Position numbers and translations under genes: made by a program
Shown here: positions 57,601 to 64,000 of the stretch, piece by piece
Position numbering within the stretch: the stretch's first letter is position 1
How the letters are laid out: each line of letters opens with the position of its first letter
Assembly (NCBI RefSeq): GCF_000002075.1
Contig: NW_004798383.1
Span: forward strand, 55,631-119,630
DNA length: 64,000 bases
Source: Aplysia californica
Taxonomy: Eukaryota
Direction of reading: 5' to 3'
Notes under the pieces: model-generated
What the model was told of the DNA's origin: nothing
Databases searched by the model: none
Seen by the model: the letters and a program-made list of their open reading frames with translations, nothing else

Positions 57601-59499
57601 ATTTGAGGCTGGCCTGAAAAGTTAGAGCGCTTCTAATAAATGTTTATTTGTCAACAGGTCATCAGAAGCAATTAAAGATGGCTCGTTAGCGTGTGTCAGG
57701 GTCGGATGGACGGCCTGCACAAGTGTGGCTGTGTGTGCGTGTCGGGGAAGGGCGCTATCGTCCGAGCGTTGAACGTCGCATACGCGTTAGTCCCCCCCGC
57801 CGGCAATTGATCATTATTACAATAATAAGCTAGTCTTGACGTAGATCTACGTAATGAATTGTGCGCTGGTCTATGGAATCAAAAGTTGCCGTATGCTTGG
57901 CTCTACACAGCAACACAGCTTTTTCTTGGTAAACAATCAAGATGACACAGGCTTGTGTAATTGAACGAATCGTTTTTTTTTTTTTTGCACAGCTCATAAT
58001 ATGCAGGTGCCAAGAGATCTGCTAATCTTCAATTTTACCTTTTTCTACAACAAAGAAAGTGGGGAACATAGGGGGCGGGGGGGGGGAGCGTATCAATGAG
58101 GCGGTGGGCATCGGATCAGAAGACAAGGTGTGGGGGAAACTAAAAAATGGCGGAAAATTGGAAGCACTGAACGTCAGATCTATAGAACGAAGACACTTCC
58201 TTTTTTTCCGGACCCGTGTCCGAATAAAAAATTTTCTTATTCGGACTCGAGTCCAAATATGAATTTTTAAAATTTGGACTTGAGTCCGAATATGAAAAAA
58301 TGTTATTCGGACTCGAGTCTGAATAATAAAAGGCCCCTTGTTAAAGACAATTGAAATATTACTGCTCATTTTGCACTGAAAAATAGCAGTGCACCTCTCG
58401 CTCTCTTTCGGGTAAAACATCCATACCAGATATTTAAGTCAGTATTGATATCCAGTACTCTTCGGGCCAAAACCGGAGAACGACAATTTTCCAATACGAG
58501 AGAGAGAAATTATATCGGCGCTTTTTCGGTCTAGTTCCCACCCCGCAATTGTTATTCACGGGTTTTGGCCCCAAGAGTAGGGGGGTTTCAGGGGGGCTTG
58601 CCCCCTGAATTTTACCACAATTTAATGTTTTGCTGTTGTTAGGTTTGATATCTTAGCTCACCGCGAATCAAACGTATAGATCTAGAATCTAGATGTAGGT
58701 CAGGCTCATAAGGGGGGTGGGAACTACCGAAAAAGCACCATTATATCCAGGTCTTATGATTAGGCCCAACTTAGATTAGATTCTAGATCTAGATCAAATG
58801 ATCTTAAACAATTTTTTTTTCTGGTTTAGATCTAGATCTAGATTATTAGATCTAGATCTAGAGATATCTAGATCTAGATCTAAACTCTAGATAGAACTAG
58901 ATCTAGATTCTAAAAAGAAATCTAGATCTAGATCTATCTAGATCAAGATTTCGGTGCTTTTTCGGTAGTTCCCACCCCCCTTATTTGAGCCTGACCTACA
59001 TCTAGATCTAGATCTATATTAATGTTTGATTCGCGGTGAGCTAAGATATCAAACCTAACAACTGCAAAACATTAAATTATGGTAAAATTCAGGGGGGCAT
59101 GCCCCCCTGAAACCCCCTACCTATTTTTATTAGGTCAGGGGGGCAAGCCCCCCTGAAACCCCCCTACTCTTGTGGCCCAAACCCGTGAATAAAATTGCGG
59201 GGTGGGAACTACCGAAAAAGCGCCAAGATTTCTAGATCTAAATGCACCCTTGTGATTCCATCTTAGACAGGTTTGACGGTAGATTCTAAATAGATCTATT
59301 TGTAAAATAATCTTACTAATGGGTCAGAATGTGAGCTGAAAGATTGACAAGCCATTCGTTTCCAAGGGTTTGTTCCAGATGACAGCGGGGTCCTCTCTGT
59401 TACTGTTGAGTCTGTTGTATTTGTGAAAATATTGCCAAGTCGTGATCCATACCGACAGAACATTCTCTCAAACGCTCTTTTCTGTATATTAAGTGCCAT
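40513..59499 (-). CDS. NUBPL: Iron-sulfur cluster transfer protein NUBPL/Ind1 (Mrp/NBP35 family, complex I assembly), whole gene: 10 coding exons, 1041 nt, 346 aa
   Basis: complement(join(59317..59499,54681..54828,53915..53949,52818..52908,47833..47872,46760..46850,44244..44337,43482..43688,42249..42331,40513..40581)). All introns are GT-AG and phase-compatible. Motifs: [55 protein letters not shown]. No N-terminal 4-Cys motif of Nbp35; Arg-rich presequence-like N-terminus. Confidence 0.94.
41220..41415 (+). repeat. Dispersed repeat family; other copies at about 8215-8410, 28120-28430 and 54065-54245 (inverted)
   Basis: Shared AAAAGTGGTTGTCTTAGACAGGTGGA..TCTTGGAC..TGTCATTATTATA core followed by a G-run. 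Confidence 0.6.
42249..42331 (-). CDS. NUBPL: NUBPL exon 9 ([19 protein letters not shown])
   Basis: Acceptor tacag|, donor GAG|GTAACT. Confidence 0.93.
43240..43462. repeat. (GA)n-rich microsatellite
   Basis: Seen directly. Confidence 0.9.
43482..43688 (-). CDS. NUBPL: NUBPL exon 8 (VIVTTPQD...[13 protein letters not shown])
   Basis: Acceptor actag|, donor G|GTTTGT; contains the Fe-S-ligating CxxC. Confidence 0.93.
44244..44337 (-). CDS. NUBPL: NUBPL exon 7 ([24 protein letters not shown])
   Basis: Acceptor ggcag|, donor G|GTAAGG. Confidence 0.95.
45245..45655. repeat. Compound (CT)/(CTGT)/(CA) microsatellite
   Basis: Seen directly. Confidence 0.9.
46030..46420 (-). mobile_element. 3' fragment of an RLE-type non-LTR retrotransposon (HERO/R2-like)
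   Basis: Minus-strand [23 protein letters not shown] and VGCRGF-like restriction-like endonuclease motifs, frameshifted. Confidence 0.65.
46760..46850 (-). CDS. NUBPL: NUBPL exon 6 ([30 protein letters not shown])
   Basis: Acceptor atcag|, donor GAG|GTAAGA. Confidence 0.95.
47833..47872 (-). CDS. NUBPL: NUBPL exon 5 ([12 protein letters not shown])
   Basis: Acceptor ctacag|, donor TG|GTATGG. Confidence 0.92.
48243..48468 (+). repeat. 5' LTR (226 bp)
   Basis: TGTGG...AACA; 2 mismatches versus the 3' LTR. Confidence 0.95.
48519..49244 (+). CDS. gag: Retrotransposon Gag, intact ORF with two CCHC zinc knuckles
   Basis: ATG at 48519 (MASKITT...); [13 protein letters not shown] and [14 protein letters not shown]. 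Confidence 0.85.
   Translation: MASKITTDMIKPFSGNSDVVAWLAKVKLVAGLKNIQDLAKFVPLFLEGDALALYLQLSELERSQYETTEKRLLEAFTDSSFVVFSKLTQRRWDGEHVDVFANELRRLGGLAGFSGSELDRLVRLSFVNGFPDPISCELQQMSRVFEVELSEVIAKARILTASKTGMVSIAAAGGAMANEMGSHSQRVRAFKGSCYRCGGPHMAKFCSHRADIVCYHCNEVGHIASRCSQRGNGAYQKKQEN
49196..52140 (+). pseudogene. pol: Retrotransposon pol (PR-RT-RH-INT), disrupted
   Basis: In-frame stops at 49478-80, 50543-45, 51135-37 and 51976-78; frameshifts or deletions near 50725 and 51420. Confidence 0.88.
52270..52495 (+). repeat. 3' LTR (226 bp)
   Basis: Preceded by a short G-rich PPT-like ACGGGGGCG. Confidence 0.95.
52818..52908 (-). CDS. NUBPL: NUBPL exon 4 ([19 protein letters not shown])
   Basis: Acceptor cccag|, donor C|GTAAGA. 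Confidence 0.95.
53915..53949 (-). CDS. NUBPL: NUBPL exon 3 ([12 protein letters not shown])
   Basis: Acceptor cccag|, donor CAA|GTAAGA. Confidence 0.9.
54681..54828 (-). CDS. NUBPL: NUBPL exon 2 with deviant Walker A ([13 protein letters not shown])
   Basis: Acceptor ttccag|, donor G|GTGAGT. Confidence 0.95.
57368..58334. mobile_element. MITE-like element with palindromic TTCGGACTCGAGTCCGAA subterminal repeats; a related element at about 60482-61130
   Basis: GGCCTATTTTTATTA...TAATAAAAGGCC ends; several copies of the palindrome at both termini. Confidence 0.55.
58517..59224. repeat. Two inverted copies of one MITE (58517-58739 and 58953-59224) around an (AGATCT)n-rich spacer
   Basis: Each copy has TIR GGYGCTTTTTCGGTAGTTCCCACCCC; the internal sequences are reverse complements of each other. 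Confidence 0.8.
59317..59499 (-). CDS. NUBPL: NUBPL exon 1, probable mitochondrial targeting peptide ([21 protein letters not shown]...SHSDPL)
   Basis: ATG at 59499; donor TTA|GTAAGA in phase 0, matching exon 2; basic/hydroxylated composition. Confidence 0.75.
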
Positions 59500-60040
59500 T
59501 ATGGAACTGTTATATGTATTCTACGTGATATTACGCCCATACAATTCGTTTGAAGACAATAGCAACAGTATGTACAAATTACGAGGCTTAAAAATACATC
59601 AACCAGGAATGAGATTTCGCTGCAGAAGGTTGCATGCAACCTCATTTGTTTACAACTTTGATCAATTCAGAGTCAGAGTGTCCTCCCTTCGAGATCCGAC
59701 CAGACTCGTCCAAATGTCAAAACCTAGCATAATGATAGACCTACAAACTTCTTCAAAGAATTCCCACTCACTTTTCGTTGTAATGATGCATTTTCTTTTC
59801 GAACAATAATAAACTAAAAGACATATTATTCCCTAAATATTTAGAATTGGTTATCTTTTTTAAAACACGAGAAAATTCGGCTTTAAAAAATTACATGTAG
59901 TTGCATACCGGTATTTAGACAGCTTAGAAAAAGTAATTGCAGTAAAATCTGGTAAAATTGACAAAAGGAGATAACTCTATGAGAATAGCAAACTCTTTAG
60001 TAGATCAAGAGAGGAAAGGATTAAAACTGCGGGGTCAAAT
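59500..60040. promoter_or_regulatory. Putative bidirectional promoter between NUBPL (-) and the aminotransferase gene (+)
   Basis: Inferred only from the divergent arrangement of NUBPL exon 1 and the candidate first exon. Confidence 0.4.
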
Positions 60041-60100
60041 GTGTTTTAGAATTCAGAATGTAAACACCGGCAGAGCAGCGCAGTCTACACTGTAAGAAGA
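60040..60100 (+). other. Candidate non-coding first exon of the aminotransferase gene
   Basis: GC-richer patch ending AAGA|GTGAGT at 60100/60101. Splicing to the acceptor at 62569 places an in-frame TAA upstream of ATG 62597. The 5' boundary is approximate. Confidence 0.4.
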
Positions 60101-61231
60101 GTGAGTTCTATCTCCGTTAGAATTCGCTCTCGTCCTGGGGTTAATCATCTGAACCCACCAGTTCAACATGTTTTCAACTTTCTAGAATAGATCGGTTGTT
60201 GATTGTTTGATGGTATGGAAATGGATAATTATTATCTAAAATTAATTGTATGTTTAATTTAATAGATTCTATAATAAGGGTAACTTACACAGGCACGGTA
60301 ATAATAGTATTTTCGGGGTAGGCTACTTTGACAGTTTTTTTTTCAATTTTCATAAAGGAAAAAGCCCATTTTCAAATATTGAGCATTTGTTATTTTCTTC
60401 TTCAAACCTTTCAACTTCATCTCCAAAAATATCAAATATAATGGGAAAATGTCCAATTAATGTGAAATAAAGGAATTTTAAGGCCGCCGCTATTCAGACT
60501 CGAGTCCTAACAGCCACAGGAAGCTATTCGGACTCTCGAGTCTGCTTTCGAATCCGAATAGAAGGCTATTCGGACGCAAACTCCAATGTGCGTGCGCAAT
60601 CAGGTGCACCGGGTGTGAAGCAGACAAGCAATTCGACCTTGGTCTTCCTCGGTTTCTACGATCTGGCCAAGGAACTTACAACAAATGGAATCCGGCTGTG
60701 GTGACCTAGTGCGAACTGTGGTCTTTTCTTTTCCAAGGATAATAATATAATAGTAGGGCTGGGCAGTGGGCAACGGTATGGGAGGGAATGTATAGCATGA
60801 TCATAAAAAAAGGGGTGAAGGAGGTGGGGCGGGCTTGGGGAAGTAAGATGGAGAAAGAAAAAGTAAGAGAAAGAGAGAGAGGAAAAGTAAGAGAGAGAGA
60901 GAGAAATGGGAGGGGGGGGGGGGCTGCCTTATAAGGACTGATTATAGTATTAATTTTATGTTTTGATCCCTTTGTAGTCGTGAAACGCTGTGTCATAGTA
61001 ATAGCCTACCATTAGTTTAAAGTCCGAATAGCAATGGGAGACTATTCAGACTCGAGTATAGACCTCGCTTACAGTACAACCGCACTGGAATTTGAGTCCG
61101 AATGAATAGCCTCCAGCGTCGAGTCCGAACAGCCACTTCGGAATTTTAAACAAAAGTAGTCAAGACGATTGTTTGGGGCTATAAAAGCTCCTCTATATAT
61201 GCATTTACATGTTGAATTGGTCTGTTCTGAT

Positions 61232-62260
61232 CTATAGTGGCTGGTGACAAAAGTCACACACCCACTCAACACTTTCAATATCTGTGCTGCTTGGAATATC
61301 TGTTCAGCCCAGATGATACCACTTTGCACAAATGTCACAAAACACACCCAGTTGTCGTCACCTTCAGCAGCACCACATTTGTGACAAATGTCACCTTCCT
61401 CATCTTAGCTGGATTCGATTTCTCTGTTCCTTTTCTTTCCTTTGCCTTTGCTCTTTGATTAACCTGACCTTGGCCTATTCCTATTGCTGCCGTCTTTGCT
61501 GACACCTTTCCCCAGTGAGACTCTCTCCATATCTGAATTGCAACACCCTTGCTGACCGACCACAACCACTCGCATTTCAAACCTTGGTTGAAGTTCCTTC
61601 AGGAAAAAGTCACGGATTAACTTTTCCCAAGAAGGCGTTCATGATTTGGAACCCTCTATTCTGGGGAATGTGGTGTCCACAGTGATGGGAGTAGATGATG
61701 CAGAACTAGTAGACATGGCATTGGTGGAGGCGATGGTGTCATCATTGATTCTACTGTGGTGGAAGTAGATGGTGCAGGGCCAGGAGACGACATTGGTGGA
61801 GACGATGGTGCCATCGATTCCGCAGTGGTGGAAAAAGATGCTGATGACTATGCTTTTGTGGCAGAAGGGGATATGGATCGCTCAGCAGTGGATGTATTAG
61901 GAGATGGAAGAGATACTTGGGGACGATGTTGAAAGGAAGAGGTGTCGATTGCATCCTTGTTGAAGGGGAATATATGCCTGTTCCCTGGAATCCCCCTTTC
62001 ACTTACTCCTCAGTGAAAGAACTTTCTAAAAGAGCTTTCAGCCTGCCTGGAAAGTGTTTTTTTGATACAGGCCCTGCATGAGTCCTTGCATACTTCACAA
62101 AGAGGCTTTGCCATTTGCGCTTCACAGGGCCAAGCCTGTGCGTTTGTGAGGTATGATTGCAGACGGAGCAGGATCACATTATTGGCCTTTCCTACCTTGA
62201 CGAGTTCCTCACTGATGTGGGAGGAATGGCCATCAAATATCAAAACTCGGGTGTGACTGG
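61232..62260 (-). mobile_element. Decayed pogo/Tigger-like (DDE_1) transposase with PHD finger
   Basis: LIFDGHSSHISEELV...NNVILLRL; C-terminal FCDICAKWYHLG*TDI...WVCDFC; stops and frameshifts. Confidence 0.75.
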
Positions 62261-62596
62261 CTAAGTGTGAAGTGTTAAGACAGGGTAATAAGCCCCTCTT
62301 TCTACTTATATGCTAACTTAAATTCTCTATAACTTATAAGACAAAACCTTTGGGGCCACAAGCCCCAGTCTGTTGCTTCTATAGATAATGCAGTTTTTTC
62401 ATGAAGCATGAGATGATTCTTTGTGACTTGGAAGCCCAGCAAGCCAGCTTTGCATATGTCTTTATAATATGCACTGGGTATTTTAAAAAGCGTGTATAAT
62501 GCAGTATTTTTTTATCGATTGATTGGAACTCATTCATAATATATATAACTTTTTTTTCATATTTTCAGAGCCGAGGCAGTGCGGTTTGAATACATA

Positions 62597-64000
62597 ATGA
62601 GTTATTCCGCCCTACCTTATTTCCCAGTGATAATCGGTGAGTATTTCCCTGTTATGGCATAGTTTTTCCTACTCCAATTTGACGTTTCTTTCAGCTCAAA
62701 CTTGTTACTGAGATGTGGAGCTGTACAAAAATAAAAAAGTTGTAAAGTTATGTTATTTAGGTAGTAATGGCATTAAGCTGAAATAATACAATAGTGTCAA
62801 ATGGATGGAGAGAAACAGTTGCTTAGTGCTGTGTGAAAGTGAGGTCTTTAAAAAAATTTAACTCCTCTGCTAAGACGTAGAATTATTAAAAACGCAGTAC
62901 ATGTAAGTTACCAACAGTGTGTCGTTACAAGTTCAGACGAAGCATGATATATATAGGTGTTATTTGCCCTTTCGTCTTTCTTCTTTTCATTGTTGTTATT
63001 GTGTTAATATAATTATGCACTCTGCCACTATCATTATGTGCTCATGACTTTATGCAATAGCAAGTACTGTAAAACTCTTACCAAACTAAACTCTGCAACT
63101 GGTGAGAATGTGAGAAGTTTTGATAATGGCATGAGCTTCAGTTTTGTTCCTTATTAATATTTATTTGTATTGACTATCAATGTCTCCAGATGCTTCGCTA
63201 GGGGACTTCAAGTATGCCGCCGACCAATGCATGAGATCTCACACTATGGGCCAGCGTGCTGAACTGGTCCAGACCTTGACCAAGATATGGATGTCCGAGG
63301 CCAATGCAAACTCTGTGCTGCCCTCACTGTCTGTGCGCTCAGGGTTTGATCTCTTCCTGCAGGCCAAGAGGTTCCCCAGAGGGAGCGAAGTCATAATGTC
63401 CGCTGTCAATATTCCTGACATGGGAAGGATTGTACAGAGCCATGGGCTTTCCATAGTTCCTTTAGATATTAGCATTGACTCTTTGGAACCTAAGATAGAG
63501 TCTCTCCCAAGCCTGATCTCTCCGAAGACAGTGGCTATAGTTGTGGCTCATTTATGTGGGAGGTGGATTGATATGGACCCTATTATTTCTGCAGCTCGGA
63601 TGTATGGCTTGACTGTGGTGGAGGACTGTGCTGAATGCTTCTGTGGTTTTGATCATCTGGGCCATCCAGAGTCGGACATTTCCCTATTCAGCTTTGGTAC
63701 CATCAAGTTTTCTACCTCATTTGGTGGGTGTATAGCAAAAGTCCGTGATTCCGAGGTCTTCCAAACCATGAGCAGCCTTCAAAACAACTACCCGGTTCAA
63801 ACTCCCAGCATGTACCTTAAAAAAGTTCTCAAACTGGCTGTACTGTACACCTGGATGCAAGTGAAGCCTTTTCCACAAGTTGGAAGAGAAGTTTTGTGTA
63901 GGCTAGGAGTGGACTACAAAGCCAAGTTTGTCAAGATGATGCGTGGGTTTCCCGACAAAATGCTGGAGTCCATTCGATGCCAACCAAGTTCTGCTCTCCT
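62597..64000 (+). CDS. DegT/DnrJ/EryC1/StrS-family PLP-dependent aminotransferase-like protein, 5' part (spliced; continues beyond the window)
   Basis: join(62597..62636,63190..>64000). Exon MSYSALPYFPVII+G|GTGAGT joins ctccag|AT in phase 1, then about 270 codons with no stop: SVRSGFDL, SEVIMSAVNIPDM, PKTVAIVVAHLCG, VVEDCAE (63621-63632), SDISLFSFGTIK (Lys 63705-63707), FGG. These are the fold-type-I DegT motifs. Confidence 0.85.

Follow-up and report, generated by a model that had tools for sequence, protein, structure and literature searches.

The window, a 64,000-nt stretch of Aplysia californica DNA, holds at its right-hand end the first three exons of a spliced gene for a DegT-type PLP enzyme with intact catalytic Asp and Lys residues, encoded on the plus strand. 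A contig of sequencing run X5 (contig 5; 1989 nt, depth 26.8) joins a 5′ non-coding exon (60071–60212, the 5′ boundary being the limit of the contig's reach), exon 2 (62569–62636) and the main coding exon from 63190 onward, with both joints (60212/62569 and 62636/63190) of the GT..AG type; the RNA status of this run is a program's guess, but both introns are missing from the contig. The gene is thus real and spliced, with a first intron of 2356 nt (60213–62568) and a second, phase-1 intron of 553 nt (62637–63189; GC 0.34 vs 0.48 in the exon), the latter being the splice that the first-pass annotation had proposed from canonical sites. Exon 2 contributes the start codon (ATG at 62597), 13 residues and one additional base before a GTGAGT donor, and the same short exon and phase-1 intron are found in a paralogue described below. 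Reads from two polyA runs (X21 and X22) were near zero on the exons, so expression of the gene may be low or tissue-restricted; read mapping covered the sequence up to the assembly gap described below.

The main exon (63190–64000 in the window) is stop-free across the 270 codons between 63189 and 64000 in our frame check, as first annotated, and continues intact to position 119787 of the host contig (C1113:119787), for a total of 323 codons that end at a phase-0 GTGAGT donor 157 nt beyond the window. The X5 contig departs from the genome exactly at this donor, with 815 nt remaining. The last coding exon, ending in SKL-stop, lies about 5.3 kb further downstream and outside the window (~C1113:125105–125308). 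It is separated from the main exon by a 1.9-kb assembly gap (C1113:121784–123690), which sits at the place expected for ~38 orthologue-conserved residues that are missing from the assembled locus. The gene is indeed absent from the list of open reading frames, as had been noticed, but only since its frame runs off the end of the window, and a public predicted model exists (P0001, 436 aa); database entries describe the protein as uncharacterised or give it a wrong name. P0001 runs past the real donor (C1113:119788 onward), so that its residues ~337–370 are probably intronic, and it also patches around the assembly gap. Searches were run exon by exon, and P0001 was used only for exon mapping and C-terminus counts.

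Two short upstream open reading frames are present in the spliced 5′ untranslated region. One lies at 60168–60185 of the window; the other is formed by splicing because exon 1 ends in ATG|GT (60210–60212 joined to 62569–62589), and it ends 7 nt upstream of the main ATG. A high-copy repeat occupies 58670–61030 of the window (L009:1–2360), upstream of and within intron 1, and draws numerous partial reads and contigs.

Subfamily features, range and phylogeny

Exon 3 matches the DegT profile PF01041 with 71.7 bits against a gathering cut-off of 19.8 (model positions 50–200 of 360), which bears out the family membership first assigned, as do the two catalytic motifs. EDCAE (63621–63635), whose Asp binds the PLP ring nitrogen, is unchanged at its E, D and A throughout 139 aligned members, and FSFGTIK (63687–63707), whose Schiff-base Lys is encoded at 63705–63707, has an invariant S and a Lys kept in 139 of 139; this invariant Lys favours transamination over a dehydration of the ColD/E1 type. 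The residue following EDxA had been put forward as a clue to the substrate. It is E in 97% of aligned eukaryotic-type members and Q in 97% of bacterial ones, and perosamine synthase (EDAAE) carries the same E, so we regard it as uninformative on this point. Characteristic of the subfamily is an S-V-R signature in the PLP-phosphate loop region (63330–63338), whose Arg is kept in 98–100% of members and where classical sugar aminotransferases have NG or SG; RGF, W and P motifs are further marks of the subfamily.

A structure predicted for the full-length Candidula orthologue P0004 (pLDDT 92) has a DegT-type, fold-type I PLP fold, with its best structural matches to perosamine synthase, TlmJ and ArnB at 14–20% identity (Foldseek E 3.5e-18; VIA Z ~30, rmsd ~3 Å over ~330 residues vs DegT structures). 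Set against this model, and by its lack of alignment to PDB chains and its hydropathy, a subfamily-specific helical insertion was placed at 63804–63974, after the Lys loop. It adds ~50 residues beyond the solved sugar aminotransferases, replaces the segment found there, and consists of hydrophobic (mean KD 1.3) and then amphipathic helices with the terminus RGFP..IRxQP, making it a candidate lipid- or membrane-binding part. The 270-aa exon part scores 29–45 bits with the NDP-sugar equivalog profiles ArnB, PseC, WecE, RfbH, LegC and DesI, for which NCBIfam cut-offs are 375–650 (45 vs 631 for ArnB), and full-length relatives score 65–79 bits, all below the cut-offs at about a tenth of their value. 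A search of the ESM Atlas returned generic DegT clusters only.

The paralogue, Aplysia californica LOC101848337 (C58, ~1398980–1402210, L005), opens, like the window gene, with a short coding exon followed by a phase-1 intron and also has the intron after WLFPxxx; its main exon is broken by one additional intron. The duplication took place before Aplysia, sacoglossans and pulmonates diverged. At E<1e-30 we collected 647 representatives, and the enzyme is not particular to this invertebrate: members occur in a cnidarian (Nematostella), a nematode (Romanomermis), arthropods (a centipede and a sea spider), a tardigrade, a nemertean, molluscs (gastropods, bivalves and a cephalopod), echinoderms, a hemichordate and a tunicate, as well as in Chromera, Aphanomyces and Discosporangium, with no vertebrate or insect among the matches listed. 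Bacterial members, ~35–45% identical, are commonest in Planctomycetota and sparse elsewhere, and phylum-wide genome searches, with members in 1 of 251 and 2 of 201, contributed little gene context. In the tree, animals form a single clade (support 100/97) in which the window gene groups with pulmonate gastropod orthologues (100/99), next to another group of heterobranch paralogues, and an AU test rejected a tree that constrained the window gene with bacteria (p-AU 3.2e-6). We therefore conclude that the gene was inherited vertically within animals. The intron-bearing, host-integrated enzyme of the first-pass annotation thus stands, on the strength of the X5 contig and of the introns common to the paralogue, whereas horizontal acquisition, one of its two proposed origins, is not supported as a recent event. 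A common origin of all eukaryotic members is weakly supported (45/75).

Some database models in this set have additional domains or insertions. In P0165 (Chromera velia) a Redoxin (peroxiredoxin-like) domain is joined to DegT. Further eukaryotic models pair DegT with a BSD or a glutamate-receptor domain, perhaps through the merging of separate gene models. Three echinoderm-like proteins (P0124, P0126 and P0127) have a low-complexity insertion of ~300–400 residues in a C-terminal loop, with SKL kept in two.

C-terminal tails and ether-lipid gene partners

Named full-length animal members end in [SAC][KRH][LM], mostly SKL, in 35 of 36 cases, and the last exon of the window gene ends in an SKL of this type; the tail was found in 0 of 64 bacterial members. 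Judged from its sequence, the animal tail represents a peroxisomal targeting signal of type 1 (PTS1) kept across orthologues, from which we infer peroxisomal import of the animal enzyme. This signal supplies an independent link to ether lipids: it would bring the animal enzyme to the site of alkyl-DHAP synthesis.

DegT, FAR and a GNPAT-like acyltransferase occur together in ~35 protein clusters, most of which have ACBP too, and AGPS directly follows the DegT/FAR/GNPAT part in the cases inspected. The full ACBP-DegT-FAR-GNPAT-AGPS order is seen in P0413 (a Chaetoceros debilis transcript) and P0432, and in P0376 without an ACBP match. Complete polyproteins are 2287–2479 aa long, with the HxxxxD motif, the AGPS motifs and the DegT Lys all intact, and SFGxxK is kept in all 47 EDCAE-bearing proteins longer than 1000 aa. 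At the locus of one diatom-type polyprotein (L180:693–7516) a 98-nt GT-AG intron keeps the reading frame, for which reason we treat it as one gene. No reductase domain was detected in the polyprotein, PF01370 matches in the diatom-type fusions overlap the FAR domain, and the C-terminus is without a PTS1. The diatom DegT domain is 26–32% identical to the window exon, and no clade with strong support unites it with the animal members. Such an architecture implies, as far as domain content can, the initiation of ether-lipid synthesis in diatoms.

The 927-Mb Aplysia assembly itself has an exon-sized AGPS-like match on another contig (C181) and weak FAR-like matches; its top AGPS-like match was rejected as host evidence, since the contig looks bacterial. 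An 11-kb contig (G000:C2291:6500–11251, L187) carries four tightly packed, intronless open reading frames on one strand, including one that by eye is PdxA-like and one AGPS-like FAD oxidase. It resembles a bacterial operon and is therefore probably contamination.

Bacterial members add further lipid genes, on separate branches of the tree. We found DegT-GlpD fusions behind PlsC and Lgt, or behind PAP2, acyl-CoA ligase/PlsC and Lgt; a PlsC-DegT fusion followed by a GlpD gene; a PlsC/DegT/GlpD operon; a DegT-ACP-PlsC fusion; and a DegT gene facing AGPS-like and FAR/AMP-binding genes. Fusions in bacteria most often involve a DprE1/ALO-like oxidase (~85 clusters), no fusion to an NDP-sugar enzyme was seen among the bacterial members, and LpxO/OlsC-like hydroxylases (in 16 partly redundant loci) and sulfotransferases also occur as neighbours. 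Among the 76 co-oriented neighbours drawn from 93 non-redundant loci, PF01553 acyltransferases are the top family (3 of 76) and PlsY is also present, while no epimerase, glycosyltransferase or NDP-sugar dehydratase family occurs twice (best 25 of 64 families). The majority of bacterial members (Planctomycetota) occur as singletons, and their surroundings are uninformative.

A proposed reaction on DHAP lipids and its alternatives

FAR, GNPAT and AGPS jointly yield alkyl-DHAP, whose sole carbonyl is the sn-2 ketone. On balance we favour a peroxisomal PLP aminotransferase that acts at the sn-2 ketone of a DHAP backbone, likeliest that of acyl-DHAP or alkyl-DHAP, with the substrate putatively assigned by guilt by association. 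The enzyme would be imported into the peroxisome through PEX5, where GNPAT and AGPS would provide 1-acyl- or 1-O-alkyl-DHAP; with an amino acid as donor (PLP to PMP), an amino group would then be passed to C2 of the DHAP lipid, replacing the usual ketone reduction and giving 1-O-alkyl(acyl)-serinol-3-phosphate instead of lyso-PA. An acyltransferase could N-acylate this product, and a phosphatase or head-group transferase could complete a ceramide-like ether-amide lipid. For bacteria without GNPAT and AGPS, the ketone might come from oxidation of G3P or lyso-PA by the fused GlpD-like or DprE1-like oxidase. The product is probably an undescribed N-containing ether lipid, because of the peroxisomal tag and the diatom fusion to the starter pathway of ether lipids. 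Chemistry of this kind has precedents, as RtxA converts DHAP to serinol phosphate (PMC3222319) and human PSAT1 does so as a slow side activity (PMC9283133). The main weakness of this reading is the low identity of the diatom domain to the window exon and its lack of a strongly supported grouping with animals; the uninformative surroundings of most bacterial members also count against it, as does the frequent bacterial fusion to a DprE1-like oxidase, an enzyme type whose known relatives use sugars, lipid-linked or free, as substrates.

A wider proposal, which we put forward tentatively and at less than even confidence, is that many invertebrate phyla, diatoms and other protists may have an unrecognised peroxisomal ether-lipid branch in which alkyl-DHAP is transaminated towards an undescribed, ceramide-like N-acyl-1-O-alkyl-serinol class of lipids, with the five-domain diatom polyprotein (~2300–2500 residues) making the precursor, and that this branch could be the source of marine 'serinolipids'. 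Sponges and tunicates are known to contain N-acyl-serinols and serinolipids, although symbionts may make the serinolipids of tunicates. The literature search turned up no alkyl-serinol phospholipid described from a mollusc or a diatom, which also weighs against the preferred reading. The branch may have escaped notice because no vertebrate or insect member is among the matches listed. Consistent with the earlier view of an uncharacterised enzyme pointing to an undescribed pathway, our literature search, which had most subscription journals outside its reach, yielded nothing on the subfamily, on its PTS1 or on the diatom polyprotein; a paper on Karenia wecE was set aside as concerning classical WecE. 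The words aminotransferase, DegT, diatom and ACBP are absent from a 2026 eukaryote-wide survey of FAR, GNPAT and AGPS in the plasmalogen pathway (PMC13012113). If true, the proposal would add an N-bearing branch to textbook peroxisomal ether-lipid synthesis, predict a lipid class across many invertebrates and marine diatoms, offer a candidate for the enzyme behind marine lipids that contain serinol and, by showing a 'sugar' aminotransferase fold acting on lipids, correct many 'perosamine synthase' annotations.

Several other readings have to be weighed against an aminotransferase of DHAP lipids. The enzyme could be a peroxisomal lipid aminotransferase that acts on another carbonyl, either the fatty aldehyde intermediate of FAR, with long-chain alkylamines as the product, or a keto-pentose or keto-polyol, lipid-linked, that the DprE1-like oxidase would supply. 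The position of DegT between ACBP and FAR in the diatom polyprotein, the oxidase fusions and the PTS1 would all fit; nonetheless GlpD and PlsC partners recur in the absence of FAR, and the usual substrates of the DegT fold are secondary ketones of polyols, so that we consider this reading unlikely. A different reaction on the same class of substrate, namely deamination of a serinol lipid to (alkyl-)DHAP or a PMP-dependent elimination of phosphate or alkoxide as in ColD and E1, we hold to be less likely still. Transamination is reversible, peroxisomes are degradative too, and PMP-dependent dehydratases share the fold (3bb8, ColD), yet the family has an invariant Lys in place of the ColD/E1 His, and its partners (FAR, GNPAT, AGPS, PlsC and Lgt) are biosynthetic.

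An NDP-keto-sugar or aminocyclitol aminotransferase serving mucus glycans or a defence metabolite, the role first suggested for this gene, fits the sequence and structure searches in that their top matches are sugar aminotransferases (perosamine synthase, ArnB and TlmJ), and an SDR or, by eye, glycosyltransferase-like frame lies near some bacterial loci. It is nevertheless improbable given scores far under every curated cut-off, the PTS1 tail, the ether-lipid fusions, the lack of recurrent NDP-sugar neighbours (best 25 of 64 families) and the helical insertion that replaces the segment after the Lys loop. That the locus is a contaminant, a pseudogene or a recent bacterial transfer into Aplysia would agree with the residues absent from the assembled locus and the near-zero exon reads in the polyA runs; we regard it as very improbable in view of the spliced contig, the paralogue with common introns, the nesting among gastropod orthologues, the AU result and the assembly gap where the missing segment belongs.

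The family resembles several known systems and differs from each of them. With the DegT sugar aminotransferases (perosamine synthase 3bn1/3dr4, ArnB, PseC, WecE and TlmJ) it has in common the fold, the EDxA Asp and the SFxxxK Lys, but it differs in the SVR signature, the insertion, the PTS1 and the lipid gene partners, and in its low identity and sub-equivalog scores. The PMP-dependent dehydratases ColD and E1 (RfbH) have the fold in common, with weak sequence matches, and bear a His at the catalytic Lys position, whereas the window family keeps the Lys. The Campylobacter capsule enzyme Cj1437 is a DHAP aminotransferase that makes serinol phosphate, and both it and RtxA probably belong to aminotransferase classes other than that of the window family. 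The N-terminal domain of Bradyrhizobium RtxA (PMC3222319) carries out chemistry at C2 of DHAP like that proposed here, the likeness put forward being one of chemistry. These enzymes use a soluble substrate, for toxin or capsule, in contrast to the lipid proposed for the window family. Finally, the FAR/GNPAT/AGPS route and its FARAT fusion (PMC13012113) would operate in the same compartment, and diatom-type proteins carry a domain of the window family in physical fusion with FAR-GNPAT-AGPS. In the known route the sn-2 ketone is reduced, whereas the window family is proposed to transaminate it.
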